Positions 15,549 through 63,813 of a stretch of 64,000 nucleotides of DNA are shown piece after piece; within the stretch, counting starts at the first letter, position 1; each line of letters starts with the position of its first letter. The notes below the pieces were generated by a model. That model did no database searches. It worked only from the letters and a program-made list of their open reading frames with translations, and had not been told where the DNA came from. The stretch comes from Podarcis bocagei (Eukaryota): the NCBI GenBank assembly GCA_964188305.1, contig OZ076888.1; one strand, written 5' to 3'. The translations under genes were made by a program, and so were the position numbers.

Positions 15549-15551
<3 letters not shown>

Positions 15552-15580
<29 letters not shown>
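15552..15580. repeat. (TA)n microsatellite
   Basis: Direct observation. Confidence 0.95.
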
Positions 15581-31487: not shown

Positions 31488-34235
31488 CTGGCATGTGTAA
31501 CAGAGACTTGGTTGGATGAAGCAGATGGGCCTGTCCTTGCCGCTGCTTGTCCACCAGGTTTCTCTTACGCACAGCAACCCAGGTCACGTGGGCGGGGAGG
31601 GGGGGTTGCAGTGATTTTTAGGAAGTCATTAGTTTGCACCAGGCGTCCTATTGGGAAGACCCAGTTTTCTGAGTGCATGTTCTGGAAGCTGGGCAATAGG
31701 GGCAGTACAGGATTCCTTTTGGTGTACCGACCTCCCCGCTGCACCAAGGATTCCCTGCCCGAGCTGCTTCAGGTCGTGGCGGATGTTCTCCTGGAGACAC
31801 CTAGCCTGGTCGTCCTAGGGGATTTTAACATCCATGCCGACACGACCTTACAAGGGGCCGCTCGGGACTTCGTGGAAAGCATGGCCTCCATGGGGCTGTC
31901 CCTGAATAAGTCTGGCCCAACCCATAGCCGTGGACATGCCTTGGACCTGGTGTTTACCTCTATGGATGTTGGTGATCTGACACTAAGTAAAAGCGAAATG
32001 AAAGAAGTGCCATGGTCAGATCACTTCCTGGTGCAACTGGACTTCTCTGCGACCCATCCCCTCTGCAGGGAGGTGGGACCAATTCGGATGGTCCGCCCCC
32101 GCCACTTAATGGATCCAAATGGTTTCCAGAGAGTGGTAGGGGATGCTTTATCCCATGTTGATGGCCTTTCAGCCGATTCCCTGGTGGCCCGCTGGAATGT
32201 GGAGTTAACCAGGGCTATTGACTGTTTGGCTCCGAAGCGCCCTCTCCGATTGCATGGAGCCCGGACAGCCCCATGGTTTTCCACGGATCTGAGGGCAATG
32301 AAACAATCGTTGAGACGGCTAGAGCGCCGGTGGCGGATAACTCATTCCGAATCTGACCGGACACAGGTTAGAGCTCAACGTCGAGCCTACCAAGTGGCGA
32401 TAGCGACGGCGAAGAAGAATTTCTTCACCGCCTCTATTGCATCTGCAGAAAACAGCAGCAGGAGACTTTTTCAGGTGGTTCACAATTTAGCGGAACCACC
32501 TGCAACATCGGGGCCCAGTACGGGCCACATGTTCTCCTGCAATGATTTTGCAAAGTTTTTTGCAGATAAAATCGCCCAGATTCGGGAAGAAGTAGACTCC
32601 ACCGTGGGAGCAGGGCCGGGGCGGGAGAGTGCTAGAGTTCTGTCTAGTCAAGCTGAGTGGGATCAATTTCAATCTGTTACCTCCGAGGATGTGGACAGGC
32701 TGCTTGGACGAGTGAAACCAACCACCTGTCTCCTGGATCCTTGCCCATCCTGGCTTATAAAAGCTAGCCGGGAAGGACTGGGCGATGGGCTTCGTGGGGT
32801 GGTGAATGCTTCCCTCCGTGAGGGAGCCTTCCCAGACCCGCTGAAAGAGGCGGTTATTAAACCGCTTCTTAAAAAACCATCTTTAGATGCGGCCACGATG
32901 GCCAACTATCGCCCAGTCTCAAATCTTCCATTCCTGGGCAAGGTGATTGAGCGAGTGGTTGCTGAACAACTCCAGGCACGCCTGGAAGAAGCGGACCATT
33001 TGGATCCCTTCCAATCGGGATTCAGGCCTCATCATGGGACTGAAACTGCCTTGGTCGCACTGGTTGATGATCTCCGGCGGGCTAGGGACAAGGGTGAGAG
33101 CTGTTTCCTAGTTCTGCTGGATCTCTCAGCGGCGTTTGATACCATCGACCATAGCATCCTTCTGGACCGTCTTGAGGGGCTGGGAGCTGGGGGCACTGTT
33201 ATACAGTGGTTCCGCTCCTTCCTCCTGGGCCGTGTTCAGAAAGTGGTGGTGGGGGATGAGTGTTCAGACCCTTGGGCCCTCACTTGTGGGGTGCCTCAGG
33301 GTTCTGTCCTCTCCCCCATGCTTTTTAACATCTATATGAAGCCGCTGGGAGAGATCATCAGGAGGTTTGGGCTGGGTGTTCATCAGTATGCGGATGACAC
33401 CCAGCTCTACCTCTCTTTTAAATCAGAACCAGTGAAGGCGGTGAAGGTCCTGTGTGAGTGTCTGGAGGCGGTTGGAGGATGGATGGCGGCTAACAGATTG
33501 AGGTTGAATCCTGACAAGACAGAAGTACTGTTTTTGGGGGACAGGAGGCGGGCAGGTGTGGAGGATTCCCTGGTCCTGAATGGGGTAACTGTGCCCCTGA
33601 AGGACCAGGTGCGCAGCCTGGGAGTCATTTTGGACTCACAGCTGTCCATGGAGGCACAGGTCAAATCTGTGTCCAGGGCAGCTGTTTACCAGCTCCATCT
33701 GGTACGTAGGCTGAGACCCTATCTGCCTGCGGACTGTCTCGCCAGAGTGGTGCATGCTCTGGTTATCTCCCGCTTGGACTACTGCAATGCGCTCTACGTG
33801 GGGCTACCTTTGAAGGTGACGCGGAAACTACAACTAATCCAGAATGCGGCAGCTAGACTGGTGACTGGGAGCGGCCGCCGAGACCATATAACACCGGTCT
33901 TGAAAGACCTGCATTGGCTCCCAGTACGTTTCCGAGCACAATTCAAAGTGTTGGTGCTGACCTTTAAAGCCCTAAACGGCCTCGGTCCAGTATACCTGAA
34001 GGAGCGTCTCCACCCCCATCAGTCTGCCCGGACGCTGAAGTCCAGCGCCGAGGGCCTTCTGGCGGTTCCCTCACTGCGAGAAGCAAAGCTACAGGGAACC
34101 AGGCAGAGGGCCTTCTCGGTAGTGGCGCCCGCCCTGTGGAACGCCCTTCCAGCAGATGTCAAAGCGATAAACAACTATCTGACATTCAGGAGACATCTTA
34201 AGGCAGCCCTGTTCAGGGAAGTTTTTAACGTGTGA
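31488..34235 (+). CDS. L2 ORF2 (APE endonuclease + reverse transcriptase), uninterrupted but lacking its N-terminus
   Basis: EN motifs ETW, YRPP, GDFN, LDLVF and SDH. RT motifs NYRPVSNLPFLGK, QSGFR, LDLSAAFDTIDH, GVPQGSVLSP and YADD. Confidence 0.88.
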   Translation: MACVTETWLDEADGPVLAAACPPGFSYAQQPRSRGRGGGVAVIFRKSLVCTRRPIGKTQFSECMFWKLGNRGSTGFLLVYRPPRCTKDSLPELLQVVADVLLETPSLVVLGDFNIHADTTLQGAARDFVESMASMGLSLNKSGPTHSRGHALDLVFTSMDVGDLTLSKSEMKEVPWSDHFLVQLDFSATHPLCREVGPIRMVRPRHLMDPNGFQRVVGDALSHVDGLSADSLVARWNVELTRAIDCLAPKRPLRLHGARTAPWFSTDLRAMKQSLRRLERRWRITHSESDRTQVRAQRRAYQVAIATAKKNFFTASIASAENSSRRLFQVVHNLAEPPATSGPSTGHMFSCNDFAKFFADKIAQIREEVDSTVGAGPGRESARVLSSQAEWDQFQSVTSEDVDRLLGRVKPTTCLLDPCPSWLIKASREGLGDGLRGVVNASLREGAFPDPLKEAVIKPLLKKPSLDAATMANYRPVSNLPFLGKVIERVVAEQLQARLEEADHLDPFQSGFRPHHGTETALVALVDDLRRARDKGESCFLVLLDLSAAFDTIDHSILLDRLEGLGAGGTVIQWFRSFLLGRVQKVVVGDECSDPWALTCGVPQGSVLSPMLFNIYMKPLGEIIRRFGLGVHQYADDTQLYLSFKSEPVKAVKVLCECLEAVGGWMAANRLRLNPDKTEVLFLGDRRRAGVEDSLVLNGVTVPLKDQVRSLGVILDSQLSMEAQVKSVSRAAVYQLHLVRRLRPYLPADCLARVVHALVISRLDYCNALYVGLPLKVTRKLQLIQNAAARLVTGSGRRDHITPVLKDLHWLPVRFRAQFKVLVLTFKALNGLGPVYLKERLHPHQSARTLKSSAEGLLAVPSLREAKLQGTRQRAFSVVAPALWNALPADVKAINNYLTFRRHLKAALFREVFNV

Positions 34236-38080: not shown

Positions 38081-39482
38081 TCAAAACTTCCATTCCTGGG
38101 CAAGGTGATTGAGCAAGCGGTTGCCGAACAACTCCAGGCACGCCGGGAAGAAGCGGACCATTTGGATCCCTTCCAGTCGGGATTCAGGCCTCATCATGGG
38201 ACTGAAACTGCCTTGGTCGCACTGGTTGATGATCTCCGGCGGGCTAGGGACAAAGGTGAGAGCTGTTTCCTAGTTCTGCTGGATCTCTCAGTGGCGTTTT
38301 GATACCATCGACCATAGCATCCTTCTGGACCGTCTTGAGGGGCTGGGAGCTGGGGGCACTGTTATACAGTGGTTCCGCTCCTTCCTCCTGGGCCGTGTTC
38401 AGAAAGTAGTGGTGGGGGATGAGTGTTCAGACCCCTGGGCTCTCACTTGTGGGGTGCCTCAGGGTTCTGTCCTCTCCCCCGTGCTTTTCAACATTTACAT
38501 GCAGCCGCTGGGAGAGATCATCAGGAGGTTTGGGCTGGGTGTTCATCAGTATGCGGATGATACCCAGCTCTACCTCTCTTTTAAATCAGAACCAGTGAAG
38601 GCGGTGAAGGTCCTGTGTGAGTGTCTGGAGGCGGTTGGAGGATGGATGGCGGCTAACAGATTGAGGTTGAATCCTGACAAGACAGAAGTACTGTTTTTGG
38701 GGGACAGGAGGCGGGCAGGTGTGGAGGATTCCCTGGTCCTGAATGGGGTAACTGTGCCCCTGAAGGACCAGGTGCGCAGCCTGGGAGTCATTTTGGACTC
38801 ACAGCTGTCCATGGAGGCACAGGTCAAATCTGTGTCCAGGGCAGCTGTTTACCAGCTCCATCTGGTACGTAGGCTGAGACCCTATCTGCCTGCGGACTGT
38901 CTCGCCAGAGTGGTGCATGCTCTGGTTATCTCCCGCTTGGACTACTGCAATGCGCTCTACGTGGGGCTACCTTTGAAGGTGACTCGGAAACTACAACTAA
39001 TCCAGAATGCGGCAGCTAGACTGGTGACTGGGAGCGGCTGCCGAGACCATATAACACCGGTCTTGAAAGACCTACATTGGCTTCCAGTACGTTTCCGAGC
39101 ACAATTCAAAGTGTTGGTGCTGACCTTTAAAGCCCTAAACGGCCTCGGTCCAGTATACCTGAAGGAGCGTCTCCACCCCCATCATTCTGCCCGGACGCTG
39201 AAGTCCAGCGCCGAGGGCCTTCTGGCGGTTCCCTCATTGCGAGAAGCAAAGCTACAGGGAACCAGGCAGAGGGCCTTCTCGGTAGTGGCGCCCGCCCTGT
39301 GGAACGCCCTTCCAGCAGATGTCAAAGCGATAAACAACTACCTGACATTCAGAAGACATCTTAAGGCAGCCCTGTTCAGGGAAGTTTTTAACGTGTGATA
39401 TTTTACTGTATTTCTGTTTTCTATGGAAGCCGCCCAGAGTGGCTGGGGAGGCCCAGCCAGATGGGCGGGGTATAAATAATAA

Positions 39483-39524
<42 letters not shown>

Positions 39525-39527
39525 GAT
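38081..39527 (+). mobile_element. Young 5'-truncated L2 (RT to 3' end)
   Basis: Near-identical to the 31488 copy with a +1 T frameshift near 38300 and a (TTA)n tail. Flanks GCCGACATC (38072-38080) and GCCGAAATC (39528-39536) are a probable TSD. Confidence 0.92.
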
Positions 39528-39604
39528 GCCGAAATCCAGTATCACCTGAGCTGTGTGAGTGCAGCTTTCTCCCAATTAGGTGCAGAGTGTTTGAGGACCA
39601 GGAC

Positions 39605-41443
39605 ATTCCCACTTGGGAAGGCAGGTGAACTAACGTCAGGCCTCATCATGGGACTGAAACTGCCTTGGTCGCACTGGTTGATGATCTCCGGCGGGCTAGG
39701 GACAAAGGTGAGAGCTGTTTCCTAGTTCTGCTGGATCTCTCAGCGGCGTTCGATACCATCGACCATAGCATCCTTCTGGACCGTCTTGAGGGGCTGGGAG
39801 CTGGGGGCACTGTCATACAGTGGTTCCGCTCCTTCCTCCTGGGCCGTGTTCAGAAAGTGGTGGGGGGGGATGAGTGTTCAGACCCCTGGGCTCTCACTTG
39901 TGGGGTGCCTCAGGGTTCTGTCCTCTCCCCCATGCTTTTCAACATCTACATGCGGCCGCTGGGAGAGATCATCAGGAGGTTTGGGCTGGGTGTTCATCAG
40001 TATGCGGATGATACCCAGCTCTACCTCTCTTTTAAATCAGAACCAGTGAAGGCGGTGAAGGTCCTGTGTGAGTGTCTGGAGGCGGTTGGAGGATGGATGG
40101 CGGCTAACAGATTGAGGTTGAATCCTGACAAGACAGAAGTACTGTTTTTGGGGGACAGGAGGCGGGCAGGTGTGGAGGATTCCCTGGTCCTGAATGGGGT
40201 AACTGTGCCCCTGAAGGACCAGGTGCGCAGCCTGGGAGTCATTTTGGACTCACAGCTGTCCATTGAGGCGCAGGTCAAATCTGTGTCCAGGGCAGCTGTT
40301 TACCAGCTCCATCTGGTACGTAGGCTGAGACCCTATCTGCCTGCGGACTGTCTCGCCAGAGTGGTGCATGCTCTGGTTATCTCCCACTTGGACTACTGCA
40401 ATGCACTCTACGTGGGGCTACCTTTGAAGGTGACTCGGAAACTACAACTAATCCAGAATGCGGCAGCTAGACTGGTGACTGGGAGCGGCCGCCGAGACCA
40501 TATAACACCGGTCTTGAAAGACCTGCATTGGCTCCCAGTACGTTTCCGAGCACAATTCAAAGTGTTGGTGCTGACCTTTAAAGCCCTAAACGGCCTCGGT
40601 CCAGTATACCTGAAGGAGCGTCTCCACCCCCATCATTCTGCCCGGACGCTGAGGTCCAGCGCCGAGGGCCTTCTGGCGGTTCCCTCATTATGAGAAGCAA
40701 AGCTACAGGGAACCAGGCAGAGGGCCTTCTCGGTAGTGGCGCCCGCCCTGTGGAACGCCCTTCCAGCAGATGTCAAAGTGATAAACAACTATCTGACATT
40801 CAGGAGACATCTTAAGGCAGCCCTGTTCAGGGAAGTTTTTAACGTGTGATATTTTATTGTATTTTTGGTTTTTATGGAAGCCGCCCAGAGTGGCTGGGGA
40901 GGCCCAGCCAGATGGGCGGGGTATAAATAATAAATTATTATTATTATTATTATTATTACTGGAAGAAGTGAAGATCACCAGTTTTCAAGCAATGATTCTT
41001 CAACATCAACTTTGTTGGACTGGTCATATTGTTCGGATGCCTGATTATCGTTTTCCAAAGCAACTGCTCTATTCCCAGCTTAAGAATGGAAAGCAGAATG
41101 CCAGTGGACAACAAAAAAGGTTTAAAGACACTCTCAAGGCAAATCTTTAAAAATGCAGTATAAGCACAGATAATTGGAAAACACTGGCCTTGTGAGCTCC
41201 AATTGGAGAATAGCCTCTACTAAAGTACTTTGAAGAAGGACAAAGGGGAGAAACGAGCTAAGAGGAAGGCAAGTGTGGCAAATCCTCAGCATGATCAACT
41301 CCTGCTCGGAAACCTATGTCTCCACTGTGGAAGGATGTGTGGATCCAGAATTGGCCTCCACAGTCACTTACGGACACAGCTTTAAGACCATGTTCATTTA
41401 GGACAATCTTACTCAGCTAAGAGTGCTGGCCAAAGAAGAAGAA
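39605..41443 (+). mobile_element. RTE-clade LINE 3' fragment split by an L2
   Basis: TWEGR*TNVS (39611-39639) continues as LEEVKITSFQAMILQHQLCWTGHIVRMPDYRFPKQLLY from 40959. Terminal CLHCGR motif and (GAA)n tail at 41434-41443. Confidence 0.75.
39636..40958 (+). mobile_element. Young 5'-truncated L2
   Basis: Near-identical to the other copies, with a premature TGA at 40691-40693 (CGA>TGA) and a (TTA)n tail. Confidence 0.92.
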
Positions 41444-51730: not shown

Positions 51731-51868
51731 NNNNNNNNNNNNNNNNNNNNNNNNNNNNNNNNNNNNNNNNNNNNNNNNNNNNNNNNNNNNNNNNNNNNNN
51801 NNNNNNNNNNNNNNNNNNNNNNNNNNNNNNNNNNNNNNNNNNNNNNNNNNNNNNNNNNNNNNNNNNNN
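51731..51868. other. Assembly gap (138 N)
   Basis: N run. The left flank is the start of an L2-type 3' stem-loop and the right flank is an LTR. Confidence 1.
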
Positions 51869-59478: not shown

Positions 59479-61435
59479 TGGATATTGCATCCTTTGAAGA
59501 AATACCTGCTAGAGAGTTGCTATACGTAGCTGATCACAGAGTCCATGACACACAACTGCAGTGGAGATACACTGCAGCTGTGGACATAGTCACAATGCAC
59601 TGTAATTATTTTACAGCCTCAGCTGGGGATCAGGCAATTGGTCTATCTAGCTCAGTGTTGTCCAAACAGATTGGCAGAAGCTCACCGGGGTTTCAGACCA
59701 GAGTCTTTCACTACCTACCTGAAGATGCCAGAGATTGAATCTGTGACCTTTTGTATACAAAGCATGTGCAGGAAATAATTCATCCATTGATCACTGTAAT
59801 CAGTGTAAAGTTGTTGGAAGCCAGGTGACAGTTGGAAAAGACTTTAGAAAAATACAGTACTTTTATTCTTATAACAAAAAAGGAGGGGCCCTTCCCTTAA
59901 AAACCCAAGTGCTTTGTAAAAGAATAAGCTGCTCTTCTTCCCCTAAACCAATTCTACGTTATTTTGCTCCAACCTTGACTGTTTTTTTGAATTAACTATG
60001 TTTCCCTGAGAGATCCCTTTGATCTTCTTATGAAGTCTGTGATGCAGCAAGTTCACGTTCATGAACAACAAGCTGGGGAAATGATTTTCATCTTTGTTTA
60101 CTACCATATGTGTAAAAATAACAGCAAGCACTTTGTGCCACAAGGAAGAAGAGGTCGTGTTTGGACCATCCTTGAACTCTGAGAGCTGTCTGTTGTGATG
60201 AAAAAGAGAAATGTTGCTTCTGAAGGGCTGTAGTAGTGCCCTGGGCTGGGGAGATTTGCCTTCACTGAAAAGAGCCCAAAGAGTCTTAATTTGTGGCACC
60301 ATTTTTCACACCAAGGAATGGAATATTCACTTCCCATAGACTAACTTTCCCTAATCTGCTGCCCTCCAGACATTTTGGACTCTCCATCCCTGGCCATTGA
60401 TCATAGTCTCTGGGGAAACCCAGCCAGATGAGTGGGGTATAAATATATTATGATGGTGATGATGGTGATGATGAATTGATGGGAGATGTGTTCTGTTTCC
60501 TGAGTTGGCATCAGGTTTGGATTTGCAGGCTCTGACACAAGAGAAGGAAGAAATGTAGGTGACTGAATGGTGGAAACCTGGCTTGGAAGAAGGGTGTCTC
60601 TTTTTTGCACTCTGACTTCAGCAGCTTTGCAAGGAGGAGCGGGATGCTGGCCCCTCCCCCTGACCTTCCTGCAGAGTCAAGATCCTCCATAGAGGATGGG
60701 GAAGGCTTTGAGCAAATGAGCAGGGAAGCAGAACAGTTAGCAGCAGGGAATCATGAAGAGCCTGAACAGGAAGGTGCAGTTGTCACCTAGAACCACACTG
60801 TCTTCACAGATGGGTGCCGACCCACACACCCTGATGGAGTGTGCATTTGCAGTCCTGACATTCCTGCAAGGCAAGCAAGTCTCTCCAGTGAATGCCTCAC
60901 GCCTCCCCTTTCAAAATTTGGTGGAAGGCGGATGGAAAGTTGTTGGGACATCTTTGTCACTTCTGACCAGTTGAACTTCTTGCCCTGCTCCTGAACATGA
61001 ACATGACTTCTGAGCCCTGTGTTTGCTGCTGAGCCTCCTCTGCTTTGTGAGTTAGGGTGGGGGGAGAAGCCAATATAGTCTGGAACATCTGGAGGTTGAG
61101 GAGGATTGGGCTGGCACCCTTTGAGCTCCAAAACAGCTTCATACACTGTACTATTTTGTTTGCCAAATGGGCAAATTGGCATACAGTGATACAGGGATAC
61201 TTCAGTTCTAACATTCTGCATTGTGATGCCAATGATGTTTTTTTTATGGCTGAACTCATATTAAATGAAGCATTCAATGTTCATACAATTAAGGGGAAGG
61301 GGTGGCCACCAGTAATTATCATGTTTACCTCCAGAACCTTCTGTACCAGCACGTTCTTCACCAGCAGGTTTTGAATTTCTGCTGTAGGAGCTCTTGCTAC
61401 CTTGAGCAAAGAAGCTAGTTTGGGGGGAGGCACTA

Positions 61436-61465
<30 letters not shown>

Positions 61466-61470
<5 letters not shown>

Positions 61471-61707
61471 GGTTTTGGTATCTTCGGGTGTCTTCCCGTG
61501 TAAGAGTTGGGGTGTCTAGGCGACGTTTCGACGAGGTCTCACTCGTCATCTTCAGGCTGGTGCTTTCGGCTTCTAGCCGAAAGCACCAGCCTGAAGATGA
61601 CGAGTGAGACCTCGTCGAAACGTCGCCTAGACACCCCAACTCTTACACGGGAAGACACCCGAAGATACCAAAACCTGCATTCCTGTACCCGTGAAAATCT
61701 ACGAAAG

Positions 61708-61710
<3 letters not shown>
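61466..61710 (+). mobile_element. Penelope-like element terminus arranged as a perfect inverted repeat
   Basis: Arms 61466-61571 and 61575-61680 are exact reverse complements with loop TCT. The 3' extension cccgtgaaaatctacgaaagc resembles squamate Penelope ends. Confidence 0.75.
61589..61626 (+). ncRNA. Minimal hammerhead-ribozyme-like motif (mirror copy on the minus strand at 61520-61557)
   Basis: CTGAAGA-T-GACGAG-TGAGAC-CTCGTC-GAAA-CGTC. Core and stem II are intact, but adjacent stem I is only 2 bp. Confidence 0.55.
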
Positions 61711-61770
<60 letters not shown>

Positions 61771-62466
61771 TCAGACTTGATAATGAAGATAAACACAATC
61801 CCACGCCAAGTGAAAGAGCACCTGACGCTTCACACTGTCAATCAACACAGCAGAGTTTCTCACTACACTGGAGAAACATAGCAGGAGGGTGAAAGACTGC
61901 TGGGTACCAGCCTATTAAAAATGTTGTATAAAACTAGCTTCTCCTTGCAGTCTTACAATGCAGCTAAGTTGGCATACAACCAAGTGAGGAAAGGCAGCTT
62001 GCTTTGCCACCCAGCCTTACCAACATTTTTACATAATGCTCAAGCCAGTTTAAAAAGTATGAGACAACCCTCTTTCTCTGTGGTGTTTGTTTTTTTTTAA
62101 CAGAACTGTCAAGTATTTGTGGCCCTTAAATACCATAAGGACTGTTCTTTAGAGTTGGTGGGTACTGTCAACTTAATTCTCAGAGAGTGAAGAACTAGGG
62201 GTTCTGCACACTGCTCACTCCACTGGCCAACCCCACCAACACTCACCCCACATTAATCCCCCAGAGCTTCCCTTTCCCACCCCACTAACCCCACTTTTCA
62301 CATTCTCAACTATTTTTGAAGCCACTTCTCTCTTCTACTCTGCGGCCCCACTTTTGCGCCCACATCTGTGCCTCTTCTGCTGATGCTTTAGTGTAAATCT
62401 CCCCTCCTTGCATGCAGACTACCCCTATGGTAACCTGCTGAATCTTCCACCCACAAAATGCAAGTA

Positions 62467-63685: not shown

Positions 63686-63813
63686 ATAGAACCATAAAGT
63701 TGGAAGGGGCCATCTAGTCCAACCCCCTGCAATGCAGGAATCTTTTGCCCAACATGGGGCTCAAACCAACAACCCTGAGATTGATAGCCTCATGCTCTAC
63801 CAACTGAGCTATC
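63686..63813 (-). mobile_element. Short tRNA(Lys)-derived SINE with CR1-like tail
   Basis: The minus strand reads GATAGCTCAGTTGGTAGAGCATGAG...GGTTTGAGCCCCATGTTGGGC, then ggttggactagatg...ccaactttatggttctat. Confidence 0.75.

Follow-up and report, generated by a model that had tools for sequence, protein, structure and literature searches.

Very probably, the inverted structure near the end of the window (the whole 64,000-nt stretch of DNA analysed here) is a dead-on-arrival insertion of a Poseidon-type Penelope-like element (PLE) whose target was a (TA)n microsatellite and which arose through target-primed reverse transcription (TPRT) from both DNA strands. All of its features have previously been described for the PLE class, and the copy is an instance of a well-described kind of insertion.

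The core of the structure is a perfect palindrome of 215 bp, in which two 106-nt arms (61466-61571 and 61575-61680) are 100% complementary and enclose 3 nt, TCT. TA tracts lie on either side, (TA)15.5 at 61437-61467 and (AT)28 at 61711-61766, and the palindrome, a tail and these tracts fall within a block of 345 nt (61429-61773). Each arm holds 8 CpGs (CpG o/e 1.08), while the window as a whole has an o/e of 0.27 and a GC content of 42%, a vertebrate-like CpG depletion. Recomputation confirmed the exact 106-bp arms, their 8 CpGs and the (TA)n on both sides that the original prediction had reported. Its description as a palindrome holds for the arms, which are perfect, but not for the block as a whole: a non-repetitive 30-nt tail (61681-61710), overlooked at the time, comes after the right arm and before (AT)28 and is found on the right side only, which makes the palindrome structure asymmetric. 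Likewise, TCT does lie between the arms as the predicted 3-nt loop, but it is element sequence belonging to the left copy and not a spacer. It is templated, being the antisense of the AGA found in longer family copies. These longer copies, seen in contigs and RNA reads, read through 61574 into TGTTACTGG... or TGTTACTGGAACAGAGC...; on the opposite strand, ...GTTCCAGTAACAAGA stands before 61575, and a related contig, L001 (see below), shows AAGA before AGCC. Because longer family copies extend past 61574, we assign TCT to the left copy. This gives a left copy of 109 nt (~107-109 nt) and a right copy of 106 nt to which the 30-nt tail is added. The outermost AT of each arm is indistinguishable from microsatellite. 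BLAST of the arm plus tail against the 64-kb window found no second copy, and the window holds no direct repeat of the palindrome unit, the arms being inverted. Only 2 (TA)n loci of at least 12 nt occur in the 64 kb, one of them occupied by the palindrome; the other, at 15551-15580, carries no PLE insertion. The window also includes a run of 138 N (51731-51868), a gap or masked sequence. Feature coordinates are collected in Table 1.

Table 1. Features of the palindromic insertion and its target, with the evidence used to place each.
Feature	Position	Strand	Evidence
Left target microsatellite (TA)n, 15.5 units	61437-61467	.	Repeat scan; empty-site contigs with 32 and 40 nt between 61428 and 61774
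Left PLE copy, tail-less: by homology ~25 nt pLTR + ~84 nt ORF start	61466-61574	-	Arm comparison
Left PLE copy, whose outer end is the putative +84 reverse-transcription start site	61466-61574	-	
'Spacer' TCT; its antisense AGA precedes AGCCGAAAG in longer copies	61572-61574	-	Contig ends at 61574, 61575
Head-to-head junction	Between 61574 and 61575		
Right PLE copy: by homology 22 nt pLTR + ORF nt 1-84	61575-61680	+	Alignment to L001
One-sided PLE tail: ORF nt 85-114, between the two putative internal RT start sites	61681-61710	+	L001 alignment
Right target microsatellite (AT)28	61711-61766	.	Repeat scan
Minimal hammerhead motif	61589-61626	+	Descriptor search, PMC4209133 criteria
Mirror-image minimal hammerhead, core from 61555, predicted cut after 61522	61520-61557	-	Descriptor search
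PLE ORF, first 38 codons (MTSETSSKRR...ENLRKQ)	61597-61710	+	66% identity to P0002

An open reading frame starts at ATG 61597, crosses the tail and then enters the microsatellite, giving 28 codons per arm and 38 with the tail. A phmmer search of the 38-residue peptide against 1.84 billion representative proteins returned 2 matches, P0001 (71% identity, E 2.8e-4) and P0002 (66% identity across residues 1-38, E 8.6e-4). The source of P0002 is L001, a Logan contig of 2,989 nt. L001 has the same hammerhead stretch with an ATG behind it at L001:119; after an apparent frameshift, a frame of 773 aa matches RVT_1 (2e-17) and, weakly, GIY-YIG (1.5e-3, below the Pfam curated cut-off). The PLE motifs LPADKGNATV, LYGLPKIHK, YVDDTF and GVYEIPC...YIGQT are present in this frame, and by eye they agree with the protein of Poseidon_Ac (PAc), the CHARACTERISED Poseidon element, a PLE from Anolis carolinensis that belongs to the Penelope/Poseidon clade (PMC11167929, Frangieh et al. 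2024; Arkhipova 2006), as printed in the supplement of PMC11167929. Poseidon elements are told from Neptune/Nematis by lacking an extra CX2-5CxxC motif upstream of GIY-YIG; upstream of GVYEIPC, inspection of L001, which is only a relative, revealed no such motif. Over 61575-61710 the window and L001 share 113 of 136 positions (83%) without a gap, including an identical run of 44 nt over the hammerhead; L001 is an 83%-similar relative from another sample and not the parent element of the source genome. Beyond +114 to +118 of the ORF the two no longer agree: the L001 ORF continues and the window enters (AT)n. In P0001, which comes from another sample, ...CENLR passes directly into HTHTHT, the repeat expected if a CA-type microsatellite is translated in that frame. 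The protein, from which alone this is known here, thereby suggests that the tail has the same end, against a different microsatellite.

The link to PLEs follows from the full-library phmmer match and the contig behind it; Pfam gave no match for either the 38-aa fragment or P0002. On this homology, each arm is made up of 22-25 nt of pLTR and the first 84 nt of the ORF of an autonomous, probably Poseidon-type PLE, and we assign the insertion to the Penelope/Poseidon clade as a derivative of such an element. Its outer ends fall at ~+84 of the ORF on the left (tail-less) and at ~+114-118 on the right (tailed), and the tail region is 67% A+C. A Penelope pLTR origin had been proposed before. The PLE affiliation stands, by homology to L001, but only 22-25 nt per arm are pLTR and the rest is ORF. 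The further proposal of a non-autonomous, retrozyme-like, ORF-less family is not supported, since the arms are homologous to an autonomous element with RT and GIY-YIG and contain 28-38 of its codons. Among the larger ORFs of the window, Pfam identified APE-type LINE RT fragments only and no PLE ORF. A 907-aa frame at 31512-34235 (+), in a GC-rich stretch, has an AP-endonuclease domain and RVT_1 (3e-37) and is apparently an intact non-LTR (LINE) ORF2, and two adjacent frames of 329 and 342 aa at 38409-40693 (+), each with a partial RVT_1 and lying in a block of 53% GC, may be a broken or duplicated LINE.

The junction between pLTR and ORF also carries a minimal hammerhead motif. We searched the window with a descriptor built on published criteria for PLE minimal hammerheads (PMC4209133): CUGANGA, an optional bulge, a stem II of at least 4 bp closed by G10.1-C11.1, GAAA, complementary 15.2/16.2, and UH. 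The 64 kb yielded 2 matches, both inside the palindrome and one per strand, and 200 shuffles yielded 0. On the plus strand, where the core starts at 61591, CUGAAGA (61591-61597) is followed by a bulged U (61598), a stem II of 6 bp with a 6-nt loop (61599-61604 paired with 61611-61616), GAAA (61617-61620), and then C-G, U and C17 at 61624, after which the cut is predicted. Stem I has only 2 contiguous base pairs (61589-90 with 61625-26). A hammerhead core on each strand with a 6-bp stem II and a 2-bp stem I was thus correctly predicted, and the descriptor finds it nowhere but in the palindrome. All of the features given in PMC4209133 are present: the boxes, the nucleotide between 9 and 10.1, G10.1-C11.1, a long helix II, a palindromic 15.2-16.2 and the absence of helix III. 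The motif and the start codon overlap: letter by letter, the ATG supplies A9, the bulged U and G10.1 of the hammerhead. Because loop II is one nucleotide shorter, the cut is predicted 25 nt past the start codon (26 in Poseidon_Ac). The Rfam hammerhead models (Hammerhead_1, _3, _II, HH9 and HH10) gave no match at E<=10 on 61000-62200 or on the arm 61576-61660, as expected because the motif is of the dimer type and lacks helix III. An exact-pattern search of the hammerhead stretch had 0 hits in viral_contigs and 0 in metagenome_contigs, neither of which includes the host genome.

At the Rfam gathering threshold, nothing passed in the palindrome region. We also considered and rejected a miRNA precursor: MIR6288 and other models matched both strands at 69.8 and 69.6 bits, short of the gathering threshold of 74, and such sub-threshold matches are a generic response to a perfect hairpin. 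Elsewhere in the window, the Rfam tRNA model matches 63754-63811 (-) in part (positions 8-63 of the model) at 31.1 bits, barely above its threshold; this match probably marks a tRNA-derived SINE, at its head, and not a tRNA gene.

Folding calculations indicate what would become of the motif in a transcript. A single arm constrained to the hammerhead fold has -20.6 kcal/mol, against -24.3 for the MFE structure, and a read-through transcript, whichever strand it copies, folds at -230 kcal/mol into a perfect 106-bp duplex, in keeping with the idea, already put forward in the original prediction, that the hairpin would sequester the ribozyme if transcribed. For the same region taken as single-stranded DNA, the computed folding energy is -171 kcal/mol (z = -35). 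Because each transcript would bear a lone, dimer-dependent motif locked in a 106-bp duplex, self-cleavage at this copy is very unlikely on these models. RNA reads of a related species, species F, showed no pile-up of read ends at the predicted cleavage site (61624/61625), at low depth.

For the surroundings of the insertion (61100-62100), contigs and reads from four runs were examined, all from related taxa, with a best word share with the window of 0.67. In sister taxon A, a 543-nt contig aligns to 61198-61428 and 61774-62050 with 32 nt between the two parts; in sister taxon B, a 1,788-nt contig aligns to 61100-61428 and 61774-62100 with 40 nt between them. The flanks diverge from the window at ~1-1.4% of positions, and both taxa lack the 345-nt block (61429-61773). 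The short interval at these empty sites is presumably a (TA)n of roughly 8-12 units. Because the site is empty in both sister taxa, the insertion is young; it is younger than the splits from taxa A and B, in agreement with the perfect arms and undecayed CpGs, and the early suggestion of a very young insertion is borne out. The filled site has 31 + 56 nt of TA repeat and the empty sites ~17-25 nt, if the unique edges are kept; target duplication, repeats added by RT or later expansion may explain the longer TA.

Could the palindrome be an artefact of assembly, either a false inverted duplication or a repeat misplaced in (TA)n? The evidence for the palindrome consists of the assembly and the fit to the PLE class, and the reads compared came from other taxa and not from the source individual (best word share 0.67). 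PLE structures are known to trouble assemblies (PMC8557442), and an insertion missing from both taxa with covered flanks is what an artefact would also give. Even so, we regard this explanation as highly improbable. The flanks are unique on both sides, the published PLE anatomy is matched exactly with a tail of +85-114 at one end, and independent short-read contigs of another taxon hold head-to-head joints of the same family; moreover, artefactual palindromes in long reads are usually of read length, versus 215 bp here.

The family itself is very abundant, with thousands of copies, mostly adjoining (TA)n. In all three genomes the arms exceed the flanks 10^3-10^4-fold in summed contig word depth, although word depth is not a copy number. 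Within the arm, depth climbs toward 61644-61677, and this rise toward the 3' end is the 5'-truncation gradient of a retrotransposon. Past 61680, the best-supported continuation in other copies is ATATAT (17, 3 and 4 contigs; 17 RNA reads). The word depth of the tail bin is 10-25% of that of the 3'-end bin, and contigs span the junction of arm and tail. Given the ATATAT continuations and the tail-spanning contigs, both types of 3' end and the targeting of (TA)n are properties of the family, and the microsatellite targeting that had been predicted is upheld by other copies that run from 61680 into ATAT.

The same data bear on whether the palindrome itself is mobile, as a non-autonomous retrozyme-like or foldback family of ~245 bp mobilised by PLEs. 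In favour of this, a contig of species F has a break at 61572, and 61575 is where a few copies begin, but 34 contigs and 50 RNA reads extend past 61574/61575 into the parent pLTR. Head-to-head joints with other centres exist as well: one in taxon A (61541->61611) is nearly symmetric, with ~76/70 nt, and two others (61552->61678 and 61572->61674) are asymmetric. Because these joints have other centres, the palindromes arise anew at insertion and are not copied as a unit. The same centre is absent among the contigs listed in the three genomes, tandem direct repeats are lacking, and the arms hold the coding start of an autonomous element. We therefore attach very little probability to a mobile palindrome. 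The retrozyme-like unit of the original prediction falls on the same grounds, since there is no tandem array and most copies continue upstream into the parent element.

In the reading that we prefer, priming from both strands of the target, the steps can be reconstructed by analogy with Poseidon_Ac. Its protein prefers AT-rich DNA and nicks and extends both strands, unlike R2 or L1; cDNA synthesis begins inside the RNA, at two neighbouring sites of an AC-rich stem-loop; and the optional tail is the sequence between the two start sites, ~nt 85-119, with the second site at ~+111-119 (PMC11167929). By this analogy, the GIY-YIG endonuclease would nick both strands of the AT-rich tract, as it does in vitro for the Anolis element, and each 3'-OH would prime a cDNA internally in the RNA, at the AC-rich start of the ORF, with one cDNA at each of the two adjacent RT start sites. 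Both cDNAs would stop after ~106-109 nt; either end joining or a jump, in which one cDNA takes the other as template, would then connect them head to head. Two priming events are indicated because the left copy is tail-less with an inner TCT whereas the right copy is tailed, and a head-to-head pair may be expected because the Poseidon enzyme nicks and extends both DNA strands, an activity established in vitro for the element of another species (PMC11167929).

Two independent primings do not predict arms of nearly equal length (109 and 106). Synthesis may have been coupled in a dimeric RNP, or the RNA may have a preferred 5' end ~22-25 nt upstream of the ATG. Nearly equal lengths would also suit a different origin, in which a single priming gave rise to both arms, either because one cDNA folded back (hairpin self-priming) or because the palindrome formed after insertion. 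A snap-back would account for 100% identity between the arms and for a templated 3-nt centre, as expected of its loop; the nearly symmetric joint of taxon A (~76/70) and the minority base T61666/A61480, found in both arms at a position where C makes up ~99% of family depth, are also as it would have them, the shared base indicating a single source RNA species. The tail, however, is one-sided; it is the most diagnostic PLE signature, and it rules out a simple snap-back. Copying from a tail-less left cDNA would reach (TA)n and not ORF nt 85-114, and fold-back of a tailed right cDNA would give tails at both ends and would put TCT, not AGA, on the minus strand at the centre. The joints 61552->61678 and 61572->61674 are asymmetric, too. 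Because only one side has a tail and because of the way TCT is oriented at the centre, we rejected snap-back as the main model and consider a single priming very unlikely.

Lacking an RT and almost all of the pLTR, the copy is inert and cannot transpose. Only passive effects are plausible: it would form a palindrome prone to cruciforms and hairpins beside an expanded (TA)n, and, if read through, a dsRNA for ADAR or Dicer. Silencing through dsRNA and ADAR had been proposed at the outset. RNA depth of species F across the flanks (61100-62100) was zero, with no RNA from the palindrome locus. At the level of the family, strand-specific A>G changes in RNA are suggestive. Reads aligning to the arm (n=155) all continue into other sequence, in both orientations, and therefore derive from other copies. 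Reads with a sense first mate show T>C at 61592, 61605, 61612, 61628, 61643 and 61644, mirrored by A>G at 61518-61554; the changes affect 11 positions, in up to 25-45% of reads and several per read, and DNA contigs under the same species label have none of them. Given the usual dUTP library, this pattern therefore corresponds to A>G in antisense RNA of the family. The clusters look like ADAR hyper-editing of antisense PLE family RNA, in a comparison of RNA and DNA matched by species label.

At the level of the genome the importance of the copy is small, as it adds another inert copy of an abundant retrotransposon. Locally, with 215 bp of perfect palindrome next to a long (TA)n, the site is a candidate for instability, and the insertion is a clean presence/absence marker among closely related lizard taxa. 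It may also be seen as a natural counterpart of the 2024 in vitro result, with ends at both internal initiation sites, one per strand. A more speculative reading, which we judge unlikely but worth stating, is that short Poseidon stub pairs are in vivo footprints of concerted, dimeric two-strand TPRT and that PLEs are the main source of dsRNA and A-to-I editing in lacertids. If so, there would be one arm per internal start site, the cDNAs being made in step with one jumping onto the other, and this would account for arms of nearly the same length. In primates, inverted Alus are the main endogenous source of long dsRNA and of A-to-I hyper-editing; thousands of inverted PLE pairs in lacertids would then parallel them, and the A>G clusters in antisense family RNA would be a first sign of PLE-driven hyper-editing.

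Among known systems, PLE insertions in general are the natural reference. Their hallmarks, according to PMC8557442 (Craig et al. 2021), are an adjacent inverted 5'-truncated copy, a tail of 30-40 bp at only one end and a preference for (TA)n, and the present copy has in common with them the 5' truncation, the inverted neighbour, the one-end tail and the bias to microsatellites or (TA)n (Evgen'ev & Arkhipova 2005; PMC8557442). It differs in its extreme truncation and in having neither a full nor a tandem copy to separate the inverted repeats, which leaves the two stubs as a perfect hairpin. Dual hammerhead motifs on opposite strands, 100-700 bp apart, have been reported for PLEs (Cervera & De la Pena 2014, PMC4209133); helix I of the palindrome has 2 bp, like the D. 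virilis variant, whereas 4-5 bp are usual in metazoan PLEs (PMC4209133). The metazoan non-LTR retrozymes (Cervera & De la Pena 2020, PMC7229834; Li et al. 2026 preprint, 10.64898/2026.07.22.740005) likewise contain PLE-derived hammerheads, of type I, and rely on the machinery of PLEs. A retrozyme, however, is a non-coding unit in tandem direct repeat that gives rise to circRNAs, whereas the palindrome is inverted, with one sense motif per strand and a PLE coding start. As in L1 twin priming, both ends of a staggered break would prime cDNA and produce an inverted structure. L1 twin priming, however, inverts a different, more 5' part of the RNA, whereas both arms here copy the same 3'-proximal segment and, unlike L1 inversions, begin at defined internal start sites.

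Poseidon_Ac offers the closest comparison. In both elements the hammerhead lies at the junction of pLTR and ORF, with A9 in ATG A, a bulged U, G10.1, a 6-bp stem II and then GAAAC-GUC; in Poseidon_Ac, too, the ATG is at A9 and the cut falls 26 bp past the start codon (PMC11167929). Copies of both end at ~+84/85 and ~+114-119, have a tail of ~30-34 nt and lie in AT-rich targets. RNA-seq of Poseidon_Ac showed no pile-up of cleavage ends either, and cleavage required protein (PMC11167929). The two nevertheless belong to different families: by eye they are only ~60% alike over 114 nt and their peptides hardly align, and the stub has a loop II shorter by 1 nt and measures ~245 bp against 2.7 kb for active PAc. 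Stem II, compared by eye, reads GACGAG/CUCGUC here and GCCUGC/GUGGGC in PAc, such that several pairs have changed and the pairing is kept.
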